Below are positions 1-63,241 of a stretch of DNA of 64,000 bases, one piece after another. The translations under genes were made by a program, and so were the position numbers. Numbering within the stretch: the stretch's first letter is position 1; every line of letters starts with the position of its first letter. The stretch is taken from contig JAMWBK010000010.1 in NCBI GenBank assembly GCA_029953675.1, forward strand, positions 372,001 to 436,000. The letters are read 5' to 3'. Origin of the DNA: Rhodosorus marinus CCMP1338. Lineage: Eukaryota; Plantae; Rhodophyta. The notes below the pieces were generated by a model. That model made no database searches and was not told the DNA's origin. It worked only from the letters and a program-made list of their open reading frames with translations.

Positions 1-1289
1 ACTCAGAGATTCCGCGCGGACAGTTTCTAAGATGTTCTCAACAATCTAGACTTTGTCCTGGGCGATTCGAATAGAACATGCAGAGCAAATTAGTGTTACC
101 CAGAAGAAGTCACTTTCGGACGATGCAGCACAAGCTCAGTAAGCAGAATTGTAAAATGCTCTACAGACTAAAACAATGCCTCTGTCGAAGAATCGTATCT
201 GAGCTGTTCATGGGTCAGTCGCCTATCTACAGGTAGCCGTACTATACCGTTCAAACGTGTTACTAAGAATCTAACAAAGAGCCGAGAGGCTTCAAGCGCC
301 TCATAACGGGCTAATGGGTATTTCCTGTCCGCAGGTACCGCTCTATTCGAGGTCGGCGTTCTTGCTGGGGCGCCGTCGACTTCTCGACATGCCTCTACGG
401 GAGCTTGAGCCCAGGACTAGCCTTCTGTCCATAGTCATAGCGTTGTTAAGTCCTGTCAGGGGTCTGCGACTCCCCGTGGAAACCCCTATCGGAATAAGAG
501 TTGCTGCGGTTCCGGTATCTGCTGACTACCAAAACGGTCACCAACACATACACTCCCCACACCTCCAGGATGAAATCAAGCGATCACCCACCACACAACA
601 CGATCCAGGACGTCAAGCCTCATGCGAAAGATTTGAGGGTCACTGCTGATGGTGATACTTTGGTTGGCTCCCAGTCCGCTCCTTGTGGACGTTCAGAAAT
701 TACTACCAACACGACACGGGGGATGAAGCTCCAGAAACATATTTCATTATATTTTTGAGGGTTTCTATTTTAGGATTCTCGGAATTTAGCCGCTTTTTGG
801 TGTAAGGACGTTGTTGAGTAGTTTTTTTCGGGAGGGTGTTGCGTTGGGAGGGGACGTGGGGACGAGATGATGACGTACATGAGTGAAGTGTTAGTTTACG
901 TCCTGCATCGTGATCTTGAAAGAGCAAGGCCTGAGCTTCACCCTGAAGCAATCATCGCGTTTTCGGAGGGACGGTCAATGTTGAAAAGCGTCCGAGAGTG
1001 TAGAAACTCTTTCAACACAGAGGATCCGTCGTGTTGACAGGAGTTTTAGGAATCAAGACTGCGGATTTAGGATAGTTAGTTGGGTGGGCTCACTTCGAGT
1101 TAGTACATTGGACTGTACTTATGAGCATTCAGTAGCAGGCTTTTTGTGTCTCCGTCCAGGTTTCAGCACGTGTACTCCGGATGATTCTAACGGAAAATTA
1201 GCTGAATTTTTTGAATTTTCGTTCGAATGCCCCTACTGACGCAGTCGCAGCTCAGAAGTACAGCAAGGATCGCCTCTAGAGTCCACCGA

Positions 1290-3384: not shown

Positions 3385-6159
3385 ATGGTTATTACTTCCA
3401 TCGACCTTGGGTCGCTGGACGAGAAGATGGAGCTTCAGGTCAGCCCTGATGACCTGAAGGTGGACCCGGAATTCGGGTTGACTGAAGGGGAGGCCAAGGA
3501 GAGGATGGAGGCCATTGGTCCGAACGAGCTGCCGAAGAAGAAGAGGAACAAGTTCATGCAGTTCTTGTCGTTCTTCATGAACCCGTTGTCATATATCATG
3601 GAACTGGCTGCAATCCTGGCGATTAGTGTTACCGCTATCGGCGGGAATGTTCCGGACTACCCGGACTTTATCGGAATCGTGTTTTTGCTCGTGGTCAATG
3701 CTACAATCGGATTCGTTGAAGAGACAAAGGCTGGAGATGCTGTAGATGCTTTGATGGCGTCCCTGAGTCCTGAAGCAAAGGTGAAGCGTGATGGTCAGTG
3801 GAAGTCAATCGACGCTCGAGAACTGGTTCCTGGCGATATCATTGCGATCAAGCTTGGAGATATTGTGCCTGCTGATGCCAAGGTCATTGCAGGAGAGAAC
3901 GTCAAGGCGGACCAGTCTGCGATGACGGGAGAGTCCCTCCCAGTGAGCAAGGAGAAGGGCGACCTTCTGTATTCTGGCTGTGTCATCAAGATGGGTGAAT
4001 GTGAGGCTCTCGTGGTCGCCACCGGACCGGCAACATTTTTCGGAAGAGCGGCAGCACTCGTGGATGAGGGTGGCCCAAGCAACCATTTCCAGATCATCCT
4101 GGTCAGGATTGGCCTTTTCTGCGTGGGCTTGATTACCATCTTCACCATCGCAATCATTATTGTGATGTGGCCAGTTTTCCAATACTCGTTCAACAGGGGA
4201 ATCAATAACGTACTTGTACTGTTGATCGGAGGTGTTCCGATTGCGATGCCGACGGTGCTCAGCGTCACCATGTCTGTTGGTGCTCACAGTCTGGCCAAGT
4301 TCAAGGCTATCGTTACTAGGATCACTGCTGTGGAGGAAATGGCAGGAATGGATATTCTCTGCTCGGACAAGACCGGTACTTTGACGAAGAATAAGCTCGA
4401 GATCAACTTGGACATGCTGATTTCCTACCTCAAGGAGTATACCGTCCATGACGTCATGGTTATGGCCGCGCGCGCCGCACGAACTGAGAACCAGGATGCG
4501 ATTGACTTCGCCATCGTAAACCAACTCAGCGACCCGAGCGAGGCCCGAAAGGACATCAAGGAGGTCCATTTCATGCCTTTCGATCCGATCAGCAAGCGTA
4601 CGCAGATCACATATGTGGACGAGGCCACCGGCAAGACGATGCGCTCCTCCAAGGGAGCCCCGCAGATCATTAGGGATATCTGCAAAGCTGAGGGCGATTT
4701 CAAGAAGGAGATCGATCAGGCCATTGACGACTTTGCAGGGAGCGGCTACCGCGCACTTGGAGTCTGCGTTGCTGAAGTACCGGAAGGAACTAGGAGTGAG
4801 GAGTTGCCTGATTGCGACTGGACCTTCGTCGGAATGATTCCCATTTATGATCCTCCAAGGGACGATTCTGCGGAAACCATTCAGAAGGCGCTCGACCTCG
4901 GTGTCCAAGTGAAGATGATCACGGGAGACCAGCTGGCTATTGGCAAAGAAACCGCTCGCCTGCTTGGTATGGGAACCAACATGTACAACGCCGAAATCCT
5001 CAGCGCTGAAAAGAAACGTGAGGTCGAGATGACCACGGGTCAGAGCATGGCTGAAGTGCTTGAGGGATGTGATGGAGTTGCGGGAGTTATGCCCGAGGAC
5101 AAGTACGAGATCGTGAAGGAGCTGATCGGCAACGGACATGTTGTTGGAATGACCGGAGATGGTGTGAACGACGCCCCTGCGCTCAAGAGGGCTAACATTG
5201 GCGTTGCAGTTGCCGACGCCACTGATGCCGCAAGGAGCGCCGCTGACATTGTTCTGACCGAGTCCGGACTCAGCGTCATCATTACTGCTATCATTGGAGC
5301 GAGGAAGATTTTCCAGAGGATGAAGAACTATGCTCTTTTGGCCACGGCAACCACTGTGAGAGTGGTCGTAAGCTTTTCGATCCTGATCTTTGCTTGGAAG
5401 TACGATCAGCCACCATTCCTGGTGCTGCTTTTGGCACTTCTCAATGACGGAACCATCATGACAATTTCAACTGATCGCGTACAGCCATCGAAGGTTCCGG
5501 ACCAGTGGAGGCTTGGAGAGATCTTCTTCGTTGCAGTTACAATGGGTCTCTACCTGACGATTTCGACGCTGCTGTTCTTCCATATTGTTTTCGAGACGGA
5601 TTTCCCACAGACGCTTGGCCTCGAAGCGCCTTGGTTGGACCCGGAGAGTTCGGACTTCAGAAACCCGAATGCGTTCATGCTCCACTCACTTGTTTACATG
5701 CAGGTCTCTATCAGTGGACAGGCGCTGATCTTCAGTACTCGCTCGACAACTTTCTGGTTTATGGAGAGGCCGAGCGTGCTCCTGATGCTCGCTTTCGTCA
5801 CAGCGCAGCTGATCTGTACCTTCCTCGGTGTTTACGCGGACTTTGGTTTCACTCAAATCTCGGGTGTTGGATGGGGCTGGGCTGCCTTCGTGTGGGTGTA
5901 CAACCTGTGCTGGTTCCTCCCGATTGACATTCCCAAGCACTTCGCGAAGGCTCTCCTGCATCCAGAGGCCTGGCTGCATAGCAGGAAGCAGCACTTCCGC
6001 GGCGCGAAGCGCACCGACCCCTTCAGGAGGAACTCGATTTCTTCCATTGGAGTCGACGCTGCCCGTCAACGTGCTTCAATCGAGTCGACGCTCACTGCAC
6101 AGCACCGAAACTCGCTCAACATTACGATTCGCGAGCTCGAGGAGAAGAAATACCGATAA
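3385..6159 (+). CDS. PMA1: Plasma-membrane P3A-type H+-ATPase (924 aa, intronless)
   Basis: DKTGTLT phosphorylation site, TGES actuator, KGAP, DPPR, MITGD and TGDGVNDAPALK motifs; GVPIAMP in M4; about 10 hydrophobic segments. Confidence 0.98.
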   Translation: MVITSIDLGSLDEKMELQVSPDDLKVDPEFGLTEGEAKERMEAIGPNELPKKKRNKFMQFLSFFMNPLSYIMELAAILAISVTAIGGNVPDYPDFIGIVFLLVVNATIGFVEETKAGDAVDALMASLSPEAKVKRDGQWKSIDARELVPGDIIAIKLGDIVPADAKVIAGENVKADQSAMTGESLPVSKEKGDLLYSGCVIKMGECEALVVATGPATFFGRAAALVDEGGPSNHFQIILVRIGLFCVGLITIFTIAIIIVMWPVFQYSFNRGINNVLVLLIGGVPIAMPTVLSVTMSVGAHSLAKFKAIVTRITAVEEMAGMDILCSDKTGTLTKNKLEINLDMLISYLKEYTVHDVMVMAARAARTENQDAIDFAIVNQLSDPSEARKDIKEVHFMPFDPISKRTQITYVDEATGKTMRSSKGAPQIIRDICKAEGDFKKEIDQAIDDFAGSGYRALGVCVAEVPEGTRSEELPDCDWTFVGMIPIYDPPRDDSAETIQKALDLGVQVKMITGDQLAIGKETARLLGMGTNMYNAEILSAEKKREVEMTTGQSMAEVLEGCDGVAGVMPEDKYEIVKELIGNGHVVGMTGDGVNDAPALKRANIGVAVADATDAARSAADIVLTESGLSVIITAIIGARKIFQRMKNYALLATATTVRVVVSFSILIFAWKYDQPPFLVLLLALLNDGTIMTISTDRVQPSKVPDQWRLGEIFFVAVTMGLYLTISTLLFFHIVFETDFPQTLGLEAPWLDPESSDFRNPNAFMLHSLVYMQVSISGQALIFSTRSTTFWFMERPSVLLMLAFVTAQLICTFLGVYADFGFTQISGVGWGWAAFVWVYNLCWFLPIDIPKHFAKALLHPEAWLHSRKQHFRGAKRTDPFRRNSISSIGVDAARQRASIESTLTAQHRNSLNITIRELEEKKYR

Positions 6160-18046: not shown

Positions 18047-19864
18047 ATGGGACGGTCTGTGATCAGATCTCTGAGCGTCGCAGCTCGTGAATCACGAAAT
18101 GTTGTTGAGGTTCTAAGCTCCCGAGGATTGCTGGGCCACACTAGCAATCGGGAGAAGATCGTGGAAGCCGCGAAGAGCCCGATGAAAGTCTACTGTGGAT
18201 TCGACCCGACCGCAGATTCGCTTCACCTCGGCAACTACTTGGGGCTGGTCGCTCTCAAGTGGTTTCAGGTCTGTGGGCACGAGGTCTTCTGCCTCATAGG
18301 AGGCTCCACAGCGCGCATCGGGGATCCGTCGGGAAAGAGCGGAGAGCGGCCGATCATGTCAGCTCAGTCCATCGAGAGGAACAGTATTCGAATTGAGCAA
18401 TCTATCAAAAGGATCCTTGGCCGTTCCGTGAAAGTGGTGAACAACCTCGACTGGGTTGGGAACCTAAGCTTTCTGGACTTTCTCGACACGATCGGCAGGA
18501 ACAGCAGAGTAGGATCGATGCTCAACCGAGAATCAGTCCGGTCTCGCCTCGAGTCACCAACTGGATTGTCGTTCGCAGAGTTCTCCTATCAACTCCTTCA
18601 AGCCTATGACTATGCCCATCTTCATGAAACCTACGGCGTCACCCTGCAGATCGGCGGCAGTGACCAGCTAGGGAACATGCAAGCTGGAGTAGACCTCGCG
18701 AAGAAACTGAAGCCGGAGGGTGAAACCCTTCACACTTTAACTTTTCCGCTTCTAACTACTGCAGACGGAAAGAAGTACGGAAAGACTGAGAGGGGAGCCG
18801 TATGGTTGGAAGCCGATCGCCTCAGCCCGTACTCATTCTACCAGTACCTCATTCAAGCCCAAGACGCCGACGTTACCAACTTGCTTAGAAAACTAACAAT
18901 GCTTCCGGAGGAGTCGATCTCAAAAGCGCAAGAAGAGCTTCTGGAAGCGCCCTTCTCCGCGCAGCGACTCCTCGCAGAAACGCTAACACGAGATCTCCAC
19001 GGAGAAGATGGCCTAGCTTCCTCACTGGTATCTCAGCACTCACATACGCTAGCTTTGCCGCTTCCTCACTGACACCGCGTTACCTAACACCTGCGTTCCA
19101 CAAACAGAGAGCAACAGACGTCCTTAAGCCCGGATCTCGACTAGACCGATCACAGATCTCAGCGGAACTATTGCTATCGCTTACTAGCGACCTACCAGTC
19201 GTCACTGTAAAACGTAAAGTGCTTCTTGAAATCTCTCTAAAATCTGTATTGGTAAGTCAAAACTTCTCTTAACCCACATTCCCGAAGAACTTTCTGACAA
19301 CCTAAACCAGGATGAGAGAACGCAACAGATCTCTACCGAAGCACATCGACATCGCCTACTGACATGAGCGAGAGGTAGAGGAGCGCAGGGAGACGTCGAG
19401 CGCGTAGTCTTCCGACGAAGACACAGTTGGCTTATGTTTTGAACTCCTTGCATCGCGTAGGCCATGTTGAAGTGTTTGGGTAGAGATGTGTTGCGATCTC
19501 TCTCTTAGGTTTTCATCTCCGCAGCAACGTAGCCCTGGTCATTGCTTACTGTATTCTGTTCATCTAGAGACGTAGAATGCCACACCTTGACCTAACAACT
19601 GCAAGGCTCGAGTCTCGATCTGAACTGAAATATTTTTCTGCTATGAAATCTCCAACCGCGTAGCTGATGTTGAAGCTTGGGAAGCGATCCGGGCTAGAGC
19701 AATTGCTGAGGGATGGACATGGATACATTAACAATGAGAGACTAGAAGCTGGTGATCGCCGGATCTCTGAAGACGATCTTCTGGAAGGGCAGGTGATGTT
19801 GGTAGGCGCTGGAAAGAAGAAGAAAGGCCTCGTTCGAGTTAAGGACGAACCTGGTCCACAGTGA
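18047..19864 (+). CDS. tyrS: Organellar (bacterial-type) tyrosyl-tRNA synthetase, 3 exons
   Basis: YCGFDPTADSLHLGN, QIGGSDQLGN and GKKYGKTE motifs; C-terminal S4-like domain (GYINNER..GAGKKK). Exons 18047-19027, 19108-19251, 19664-19864, all phase 0. Confidence 0.95.
19314..19502. ncRNA. Long imperfect hairpin (pre-miRNA-like or MITE remnant) in TyrRS intron 2
   Basis: 19321-19359 pairs with 19457-19495 over 39 positions with 4 symmetric mismatches and 2 G-U pairs; extends outward (gagaga/tctctc) and has an inner acatgagc/gcttatgt helix. Confidence 0.5.
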
Positions 19865-57651: not shown

Positions 57652-58968
57652 TTCGATGCAGATGGCAACAAAAACGAAATAGATTGACAAGAAAACGACA
57701 CCTGAAAACAGATCGAAACCAAATAAAATACAGATAAGACCCTTGTCAACCAGAAAGGATCTCTCTCGCTACTTTATGTACCAAACGCAGCCCGTTCCCC
57801 TCACCCTCTCCTCCCCCCCCCCCCCCAGGCTTAAGTCTTCTTCCCCAAACCCTGTACACCCTTCCTTGCCGGAGCTTTTGGCTGAGAGAGCTCTTCTTCT
57901 TTTTTTTGCAAAACTCTTGAAAAACAGCTTCATACTTAACATCATACATCCAATTATTTATTGCCACGTGTTCTTTACGAAGAGTTGTCCAATGAAGTGT
58001 ATAAAATTTGACCTCCAACTACATCCGCCTCGCCCTGGCGTCCTACATCTAAAACATTGTCATTTCGGCTGATGATCCTTACGATCAAGTGTTTTGGATG
58101 ATTTTATTTGCCATAGGGTCTGCCGATTTTTGATTCGCGTAAGTGTGATGTCTAAATCATAAATAATTGGGAGCTTACAACGGTCTTCGTCGGATAGATG
58201 CCAATCATGTAAAAACCCTGGCCTGGCGTGATCTCATTGTCGAGATATAATTGGTACTATGATATCGTATAGGACACGTGTAAAGTAAATATGAGATAGG
58301 TATTCTTATTATTGCTTAAAAAAGAGCTCATCAGTAAAAATATTTATAATAGGAAGACAGAGTTTCTTTCTCGAATTTACTTACGTTTTTCGAACTCCTC
58401 TTCTGGTAACGTCTTAAAAAAGCAAATACCGCACGTTTTTATTGGAATATAGACAATTTCTTTCGTACAGAACCCCTGTTTGAAGAGTGTGGTCCGACGG
58501 AAAAAAAAGCGAAGAGACTTGCTCGGGAGGAGGTTGTCGAGGAGATCAACGTTCTATCACTTCGGCTGCGATCTGGGTTTGCTTTTGGGTATTCATCGGA
58601 AGTAGAGGATCAAGTAATTCTAGCTTACGAGTTTTCGAGCCGAGAGTCTACCTTTCGTAGCTCGGACCCAACAGTTCTGCGGCTGGTTGATCCAGGCGCA
58701 AGGGCGACACGCTCACAGTTCTCATAGAACGAGCCCGACGCAGTTACCATCAAACGTATCTTTACATTATAGAACCTGATTATGAACATTCTCTACTCCT
58801 GAGATTCTTGCATCCATTTGGAACGCCAAAACTATTATTCTGTGTACCCCCACTTCAAAACCGCTTTTAAGTCTTGGGAAGCCGACCAGCTCCCTTCATC
58901 TATGACTATCAGCAGCTCTCCTGGTCCTGATAGGACGTCACTTCACCCTTTCTCCGCGCCCCAGACAC

Positions 58969-61969: not shown

Positions 61970-62692
61970 ATGGCGTTACGGAAGGGGAGCGTTGCCCCTT
62001 CCTTTCAACTGCCTGACGCGGATGGAAAGGTGTGGTCCCTGGATGAGCTCGTTGAGCAAAACTCCGTACACCTGATCTTCCTTCGTCATCTGGTGAGCAG
62101 TCTCGAGAAGCGTTTTTAGTTGTTTCGCTTGTGTTTTTAGGACTGTCATGCCCTGTTTTCGGGAATTTTGACGTTTTAGTTTCTTCGCCTATTTCTTGAA
62201 CAGAGCTGACTGCCATGACAGCGGCATGTCCTTCGGATCTGGGAGCACAGGGAGCACTACGAAAAGGTGAATTTGAGGCCAATCTTGGTCTCCTTCGTGG
62301 CATCGGGGAGAATTGGCTCGTACTTGGAGAGCATAAGCATTCGTTCAGACGCTTTCTTGATACTAATAGACAGGGCTCGAACTGTCTATGCTTCGTATGG
62401 GATGGGAAGCTCGTTGGGCGGTTCTTGGTCCCCGCTCACGCTTGGCTGGTATGGTAGAGAGATTTTGCGCGGAAGGCTCCCTCAAAGGATCCAAGAAGAT
62501 CCAAACCAGCTTGGAGGAGACTTTGTAATCAACCACCACGACAGGATAATGCTGCTTCACCACCCAAGCAGGACTCCCATCGATCGGCCGAGCGTTCACG
62601 ACGTGCTCCTGTCAGTTGACCCACATCTTGATCTTGCAGGTCATGAATTAGGCGGATCAAGTGAAGATCCACCGGATGCATGTGCCTTGTAG
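61970..62692 (+). CDS. SELENOL: Selenoprotein L-like AhpC/TSA (PRXL2-related) protein with UxxU motif, 2 exons, 203 aa
   Basis: Exon 1 61970-62092 (GSVAPSFQLPDADGKVWSLDEL..HLIFLRHL); intron 62093-62203; exon 2 begins AGC TGA CTG CCA TGA CAG CGG CAT (S-U-L-P-U-Q-R-H) and runs open to PNQLGGDFVI..H.S..P.DRPSV..LL and TAG at 62692. Confidence 0.88.
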
Positions 62693-62755: not shown

Positions 62756-62823
62756 GAAGGTTTCATATGACGACACCGCACATGAAACCCAAGCGGGACA
62801 GCGGAAGTCTGATCAAATCGTTC
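62756..62823 (+). ncRNA. Eukaryotic type II SECIS-like element in the 3' UTR
   Basis: Helix I gaaggttt/aaatc(g)ttc; core AUGAC (62767-71) opposite UGAU (62810-13); helix II gac/guc, ccgc/gcgg, ug/ca; AAA at 62785-87; mini-stem CCC-AAGC-GGG. Confidence 0.72.
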
Positions 62824-63241
62824 TATCATCGAAGCAGAATAGCACCAAAACTAACGAGATCCAAACAATGAAAGAAAGCAAGTTTCTCGTCATAATGCAT
62901 CCTGTCCACACTCTCAAACACCAAGCCATGTACACCTGCTCAGCGAACCCCGAAAGATGGAACATTGGTCATATTGAGCCACATTGGCCCGAACGAGCTA
63001 GGGCCAAATGAGCCAATGTTCCAGTTTTTATTTTTTTTGTACCATTGGCCATGTGAAGATGTCCACCTTGGCCCCAATTATTCTAAGAACATTGGCCTAA
63101 GGTACTACCCAGTTTGGCCCGGGCCAGGGGACGGATGTTTCATGGTGGAAGGTGTCTGCTAAGGACCTGACGGAGAAGGACGGGGCGTATTTTGTATAAA
63201 GGAATTTACTATTTTTGGTCATGATTTGACGATTAAATAGG

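Follow-up and report, generated by a model that had tools for sequence, protein, structure and literature searches.

Whether a TGA codon inside a gene is a stop or a selenocysteine (Sec) cannot be read from the codon itself, and a locus in the red alga Rhodosorus marinus CCMP1338 poses this question twice within a few residues. In the 64,000-nucleotide stretch of contig JAMWBK010000010.1 analysed here (the window), a reading frame for a thioredoxin-fold protein carries two TGA codons at the positions of the redox-active cysteines. We asked whether these codons are recoded as Sec, or whether the frame is spliced around them, read through in another way, or decaying. We consider it very likely that the locus is a functional nuclear gene for a 203-residue cytosolic SelL or SelL-related oxidoreductase, with a Sec-Leu-Pro-Sec redox centre and both UGAs recoded as Sec.

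The gene model has two exons (Table 1). An in-frame stop lies upstream of the ATG, and exon 1 encodes the N-terminal beta-strands of the thioredoxin fold, including the pattern APxFxLPDxxG..W.L..L that is common to the orthologs in the alignment. Exon 2 opens with AGC TGA CTG CCA TGA CAG CGG CAT GTC (S-U-L-P-U-Q-R-H-V) and continues for 157 sense codons after the TGAs. The spliced junction reads IFLRHL|S-U-LP-U-QRHV, so that removal of the intron restores FLRHL-x-U-xP-U with zero indels relative to intronless orthologs; retention of the same intron would bring three in-frame stops. The predicted 62092/62204 junction rests on this homology. The initial annotation had placed the gene, the phase-0 intron and both TGAs at these same positions, and all of them hold when the sequence is read again. 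Because there is no signal or transit peptide ahead of the fold, the protein is probably cytosolic.

Table 1. Coordinates of the gene, its candidate Sec-related elements, the C-terminal ends of red-algal orthologs and a neighbouring gene (window coordinates unless a locus is named).
Feature	Position	Strand	Description
Exon 1	61970..62092	+	123 nt, 41 codons; ATG 61970 to ..VHLIFLRHL
Intron	62093..62203	+	111 nt, phase-0, GT-AG, GTGAGC...GAACAG
Exon 2	62204..62692	+	S-U-LP-U-QRHV ... QLGGDF ... DRPSV ... DACAL; TAG 62690-62692
First candidate Sec codon (TGA)	62207..62209	+	at N-terminal Cys of CxxC
Second candidate Sec codon (TGA)	62216..62218	+	at C-terminal Cys of CxxC
Candidate type-II SECIS	62759..62819	+	74 nt past stop
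SECIS helix I	62759-63/62815-19		
SECIS AUGA	62767-70		
SECIS helix II	62772-79/62801-09		
SECIS unpaired AAA	62785-87		
SECIS mini-stem	62788-90/62795-97		
SECIS GA	62811-12		
C-terminal end, window	62678-62692		..DACAL
C-terminal end, P. purpureum	L001 4706-4720		..ECSE
C-terminal end, Purpureofilum			..NCT
C-terminal end, L082	~746-760		..DCNS
C-terminal end, L083	~653-670		..HCADGM
C-terminal end, L084	1024-1038 (approximate)		..ECKS
Tyrosyl-tRNA synthetase (organellar type)	18047-19855		exons 18047-~19027, ~19108-19254, 19664-19855; tblastn

The genomic setting of the locus is red-algal, as had been surmised from the sequence at the outset. The tyrosyl-tRNA synthetase (TyrRS) gene in the same window is 91–95% identical to Rhodosorus marinus A0A7S2ZLT3, a stylonematophycean sequence (91% over the first-exon ORF, 18047-19072), and other red algae come next, at ~55%. 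Its introns are short, with GT..AG borders; they are comparable to the intron of the SelL-like gene in their GT..ACAG form, and one of them ends, like it, in ACAG (AAACAG).

Profile searches, in which U was written as C, assign the fold and the family. Pfam AhpC-TSA (PF00578) matches residues 6-110 at 35.8 bits (E=8.5e-9; cut-off 26), and there is a weak match to AhpC-TSA_2. The NCBIfam model NF040769, "SelL-related redox protein" (SelL_rel_redox), is matched nearly end to end, over profile positions 3-170 of 173 (E=3.3e-33), with a score of 114.7 bits that falls short of the curated cut-off of 120 for this model trained on bacteria; the long, extended SelL-type homologs described below reach 95–104 bits on the same model, under the window protein. 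The family's redox context, FLRH[LF]-x-[UC]-xP-[UC]-[RQ]-x-H, is present as IFLRHLS-U-LP-U-QRHV, and so is its C-terminal signature, Q[LM]GGD[FV] ... [HY]xS ... DRP; Q143, G145, G146, D147, S163, D168 and R169 are invariant in the alignment. Thus an AhpC/TSA fold with UxxU in the place of CxxC, and a family C-terminal motif QLGGDF..DRPSV, which the initial annotation had claimed, are both borne out. Judged by these profile and motif matches, the protein is a member of the known SelL / SelL-related selenoprotein family. The thresholds of the peroxiredoxin family BCP (NF006960, 19 bits against 140) and of PRXL2 (PF13911, 23 bits against 27) are missed. ResA/TlpA-type proteins and BCP peroxiredoxins have the thioredoxin fold in common with the window protein, and its CxxC register is the same as that of ResA CEPC; membership in either group was rejected as marginal only (PDB E=0.11; BCP 19 bits, ResA 18 bits, far under the cut-offs).

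When the stretch of the protein past the second TGA was used as query, an exhaustive HMMER search found 360 relatives; a word-index homology search with the full protein gave one match only. The homologs are of three types: full-length, bacterial-looking proteins reading ..FLRHLG-C-[LIV]P-C-REHV.., ORFs of ~130 residues that start a few residues past the motif as though a stop had cut them, and a type with W in the motif. The last type, represented by the long, N-terminally extended P0155 and P0157 and the 211-residue P0156, has W at the second TGA position and reads ..LLRHFA-W-LP-W-RDHV... In one contig this gene was also called as two ORFs, one of them ending ..LLRHFA, so that each W stands for a UGA translated under code 4.

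At the level of codons, both positions were read in 80 metagenomic loci and 80 loci of GTDB genomes, the best-matching of each set (L002-L081, L085-L164). These 160 nearest prokaryotic loci comprise 145 with UxxC, five with UxxU (L023, L027, L062, L135, L154), four with CxxC and six that could not be parsed, and the 150 loci with Sec at the first position mean that this is a known and well-populated selenoprotein family. By column, the first position is TGA in 150/160 of these loci and in 4/4 red-algal orthologs; the second is TGA in all four red-algal orthologs as well, and in the prokaryotic homologs it is TGA in 5/160 and Cys in 149/160. UxxU is thus a minority state in bacteria, yet animal SelL and the red algae have it. 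Among solved structures the best match is B. subtilis ResA, whose C-E-P-C falls exactly on both TGAs, in agreement with the C, U and W columns of the homologs, so that the codons do lie at the CxxC of the fold, as first proposed, and the homologs align Cys or Sec with them column for column. Because four independent orthologous loci share both TGAs and the first is so widespread in the prokaryotic homologs, the two-TGA pattern is, by codon comparison, far beyond chance.

The nearest relatives of the window protein are red-algal. They include the MMETSP ORF P0002, from a Rhodosorus-type transcript, which is 86% identical over the C-terminal 96 residues of the window protein, P. purpureum KAA8499869.1 (P0003), other MMETSP ORFs and Purpureofilum. 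We regard KAA8499869.1 and the MMETSP ORFs P0001, P0002, P0004 and P0007 (38–86% identity) as orthologs; they share with the window gene the UxxU, the position of the candidate SECIS and the C-terminal Cys. P. purpureum differs in having no intron at this site; its genomic DNA reads ..VVLCFLRHLE-TGA-TAT-CCG-TGA-QVHVKELL.. in an uninterrupted frame. The contigs L082 and L083, presumably transcripts, read E-U-LP-U-R and D-U-LP-U-Q, and L084 reads E-U-YP-U-Q. Both TGAs are kept in all five red-algal-type sequences, and the sequence is conserved on either side of them. We take this conservation to rule out chance and pseudogenisation, and it also means that the junction FLRHL|S-U-LP-U gives the family motif without an indel and that an alternative acceptor at 62219-21, which would remove the catalytic hexapeptide, is disfavoured.

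That acceptor would be the basis of a different account of the locus, which we find very unlikely. Splicing to the next in-frame CAG (62219-21) would remove a 129-nt intron and give IFLRHL|RHVL.., a protein with no redox centre, and the UGA-bearing form would then be a non-productive isoform. The downstream AG does preserve the frame, and gene callers made an analogous skip in P. purpureum, but no part of the family is more conserved than the catalytic hexapeptide lost in this way, and the motif is contiguous in P. purpureum, L082, L083 and L084. The starts of P0002 and P0001 past the second TGA imply, moreover, a stop upstream in the mRNA, and a conserved SECIS would be left purposeless.

Gene callers had been expected to break such genes, and this is what is found. 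The P. purpureum model, KAA8499869.1 / FVE85_7454 (a 'hypothetical protein'; L001 4001-4720, VRMN01000001.1), avoids the two TGAs by removing 33 codons, FLRHLE-U-YP-U among them. The MMETSP ORFs lack everything N-terminal of the UGAs; the first Met past the second TGA is the start of both P0002 and P0001, as is expected if the mRNAs keep both UGAs. On the opposite strand in P. purpureum, a gene of 401 residues with no Pfam domain (4385-5680) overlaps the 3' UTR and the SECIS candidate, and looks spurious. Outside the red algae, the gene model P0009 (CFRG0515T1) of the ichthyosporean Creolimax fragrantissima is without ~35 residues across the redox motif; it may thus be a further UxxU/UxxC selenoprotein that was mis-spliced.

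All red-algal orthologs have in addition a Cys 2–5 residues from the C-terminal end (Table 1). The four non-window loci terminate in TGA with a C after it, formally a CxxU, and the window gene in TAG. Since the extensions that read-through would add are not conserved, the TGA in these four loci is probably a true stop. The conserved Cys may serve as a relay; the Cys-x-x-(UGA) C-terminus of four of the five orthologs could also hold a third recoded Sec, in a CxxU relay tail.

Recoding of UGA as Sec in a eukaryote would call for a SECIS element in the 3' UTR, and a candidate is present there (Table 1). Equivalent elements lie 74–111 nt past the stop in all five orthologs, and on inspection they have one architecture: helix I, an internal loop, AUGA-N and a helix II of 8–10 bp with one small internal loop or bulge, followed by an unpaired AAA, a CC that opens a mini-stem of 2–4 bp, and N-GA-N. 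The distance from AUGA to AAA is 14 nt in the window versus 12 nt in the other four. Three copies of the bare motif ATGA-N(11-14)-AAACC lie in the 64 kb, against 2.85 expected, and the other two (2282-2303 and 58576-58596, both on the minus strand) were rejected as having no supporting helices. When sequences were shuffled locally with AUGA and AAACC held fixed, the helix energy was matched in 41/2000 cases for the window and in 0–44/2000 for the other orthologs.

A covariance model gives further evidence. It was built from the four non-window orthologs only, and from the core alone because MAFFT mis-aligned the 3' halves of the full SECIS regions. It ranks 62767-62813 at the top of the window over both strands, with 14.6 bits and E=0.22 window-wide, which by our own estimate scales to ~1e-3 for the ~550 nt of sense-strand 3' UTR. 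In an alignment that was guided by the model, and that leans to the model's structure, 84% of pairing cells can pair, against 68% in shuffles (0/500) and 37–54% in slid registers, and double-sided changes occur in 8/12 pairs (1/500 shuffles). Rfam scans at gathering and at permissive thresholds made no SECIS call in the window or in the P. purpureum 3' UTR; Rfam SECIS_1 does align end to end with the L084 element as drawn, at 15.3 bits against a gathering threshold of 35. Unconstrained minimum-free-energy folding of the window sequence favours a rival hairpin at 62759-62790 over the SECIS (z-score -0.67). From the conserved layout and the covariation, we regard the 3'-UTR element as a probable SECIS.

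The rival hairpin consists of 8 bp, GGUUUCAU/AUGAAACC, and overlaps helix I and the AUGA; if it forms as folding predicts, it could compete with SECIS formation or regulate it. Two other places were tried as SECIS elements and rejected: the first AUGA past the stop (62699), on its scan scores and on a helix II that is too short with an AAAA only 5 nt off, and a hairpin at 62951-63030, the top of the energy scan, which has UGA/GA in the wrong register and lies within a cluster of GGCCAATG repeats. This cluster of CCAAT-box-like GGCCAATG / CATTGGCC words, in both orientations, extends over 62950-63125 and separates the SelL-like gene from the plus-strand ORF that follows (ATG 63244, MKFVLSYGKERWDVDL..), which by eye appears ubiquitin-like. 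The strong hairpin of the cluster, at 62953-63028, has a weak mir-1252-like match in Rfam. The cluster may represent promoter elements or a small repeat.

Sec decoding has already been described for this part of the red algae. Liang et al. 2019 (PMC6627142) give complete Sec machinery for P. purpureum and Galdieria, and place total Sec loss only in the Bangiophyceae-Florideophyceae clade; Jiang et al. 2020 (PMC7539508) count <=2 selenoproteins in red algae and list SELENOL among algal families. Complete Sec machinery and small selenoproteomes were thus already on record for the SCRP red-algal clade (PMC6627142, PMC7539508). With the SecS of P. purpureum, as given by Liang et al., as query, the second-best match was a full-length SepSecS of Rhodosorus marinus itself (P0280, 54% identity), and it is well supported that this alga decodes Sec. 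The initial annotation had treated Sec in a red alga as surprising; the decoding it implied is well supported, with SepSecS expressed in R. marinus, while the surprise was overstated, since the machinery of the clade had been published. A literature search found no paper naming both Rhodosorus and selenoproteins. The 64-kb window has no tRNA gene. Four of seven large ORFs checked elsewhere in the window end in TGA, which indicates the standard code, and a global reassignment of TGA was therefore rejected.

A reading in which the UGAs are decoded as something other than Sec is also very improbable. Near-cognate read-through with Trp, Cys or Arg would give a sulfur or non-redox variant of the protein. 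Both UGAs are followed by C, a context that is generally regarded as leaky, and the window's own SECIS evidence is moderate and not decisive. Against this, a SECIS-like element with covariation is present in all orthologs, Sec-specific machinery is present in the genus, the homologs are established selenoproteins, and two stops in tandem are unlikely to be read through efficiently if no recoding signal is present. The least probable account, which we practically set aside, is a decaying pseudogene in which an ancestral CxxC gene has acquired the TGAs by nonsense mutation and the protein is no longer made: some red algae have lost Sec decoding entirely (PMC6627142), and two stops fall within six residues of the start of exon 2, but both TGAs are kept across five lineages that are 38–86% identical, the frame stays open over the 157 codons past them with all family-invariant residues retained, the close relative P0002 is transcribed, the first-position TGA runs throughout the family, and SepSecS is found in the genus.

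The reading of the locus as a two-Sec gene, as first annotated, is supported by the conserved UGAs, the family profile, the conserved SECIS-like fold and the SepSecS of the genus. In the mechanism that we propose, the 111-nt intron would be removed and the UGAs at 62207 and 62216 recoded as selenocysteine, with the single type-II SECIS recruiting SBP2 and eEFSec carrying Sec-tRNA(Sec). The two selenols would then alternate between a diselenide and a reduced form as a U-L-P-U couple, as has been demonstrated for fish SelL. Sec insertion, the diselenide chemistry and the physiological substrate are inferred. SelL is known to insert two Sec with one SECIS (PMC3316567), and SelL and the window gene both appear to have a single 3'-UTR SECIS for two UGAs.

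How close the protein is to animal SelL is a separate question. The SelL/SELENOL known from fish and aquatic invertebrates (Shchedrina et al. 2007, as cited in PMC2398784 and PMC3316567) has in common with it the Prx-like thioredoxin fold, the UxxU, the LLRH[FL]-x-U-xP-U-R-[DE]-H context and the C-terminal Q[LM]GGDF...DRP motif. The long extended homologs, which were taken as animal-type from their architecture alone, differ: P0155 and P0157 have ~130–160 extra N-terminal residues, whereas the window protein has no long N-terminal extension and starts 8 residues ahead of the first beta-strand, and identity to it is 26–32%. Compared with this presumed animal-type SelL, the window protein is short, and the red-algal clade has a tail ending in a conserved Cys. 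Bacterial Prx-like UxxC/UxxU selenoproteins have been described (PMC13188914, PMC2398784). The bacterial SelL-related proteins (NF040769) are of similar length (~175–200 residues), are 33–40% identical and read FLRHLG-U-xP-C/U-REH; they are mostly UxxC, and a bacterial SECIS within the ORF is expected in them, whereas the alga has UxxU, a spliceosomal intron and a probable eukaryotic 3'-UTR SECIS. In length and identity, therefore, the window protein is a short form that stands nearer to the SelL-related proteins of bacteria than to animal SelL.

In a rough neighbour-joining tree with 200 bootstraps and weak resolution, the red-algal clade is recovered in 58% and Creolimax is its most frequent sister (46%); at the same weak resolution, the red algae and the long extended homologs form an exclusive group in 0/200 bootstraps. 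The name SelL in the initial annotation thus stands as SelL-like, by UxxU, fold and motifs, and orthology to animal SELENOL is unproven, given the missing extension and the absence of an exclusive grouping. Among the nearest prokaryotic loci, the named carrier genomes are mostly Chloroflexota (Anaerolineae) MAGs, with some Armatimonadota, and a cyanobacterial or plastid origin was dropped because the nearest prokaryotes are these two phyla. The short SelL lineage may go back to a bacterial UxxC SelL-related gene that was given a eukaryotic SECIS and converted to UxxU. That the SCRP red algae, possibly with Creolimax, hold a distinct short eukaryotic SelL lineage of this bacterial origin, perhaps with a third Sec, is a tentative idea that we think improbable; on this idea, the lineage would have gone unreported because all public models are truncated or mis-spliced.

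Nothing published is overturned by these results, as both the Sec machinery of the clade and SelL as an algal and aquatic family were known. What the locus adds is a new member of a known family, wrongly annotated in public records, from a clade known to use Sec. The case shows annotation pipelines destroying a selenoprotein gene, with the active site spliced out of the genome model and the transcriptome ORFs truncated. The five aligned red-algal candidate SECIS elements, which current Rfam models miss, could improve the detection of SECIS in algae. For the biology of the red algae, the locus brings a conserved protein with a predicted UxxU centre into the very small selenoproteomes reported for the lineages outside Bangiophyceae and Florideophyceae, and its presence here would mean that selenium dependence has been retained in the Stylonematophyceae.
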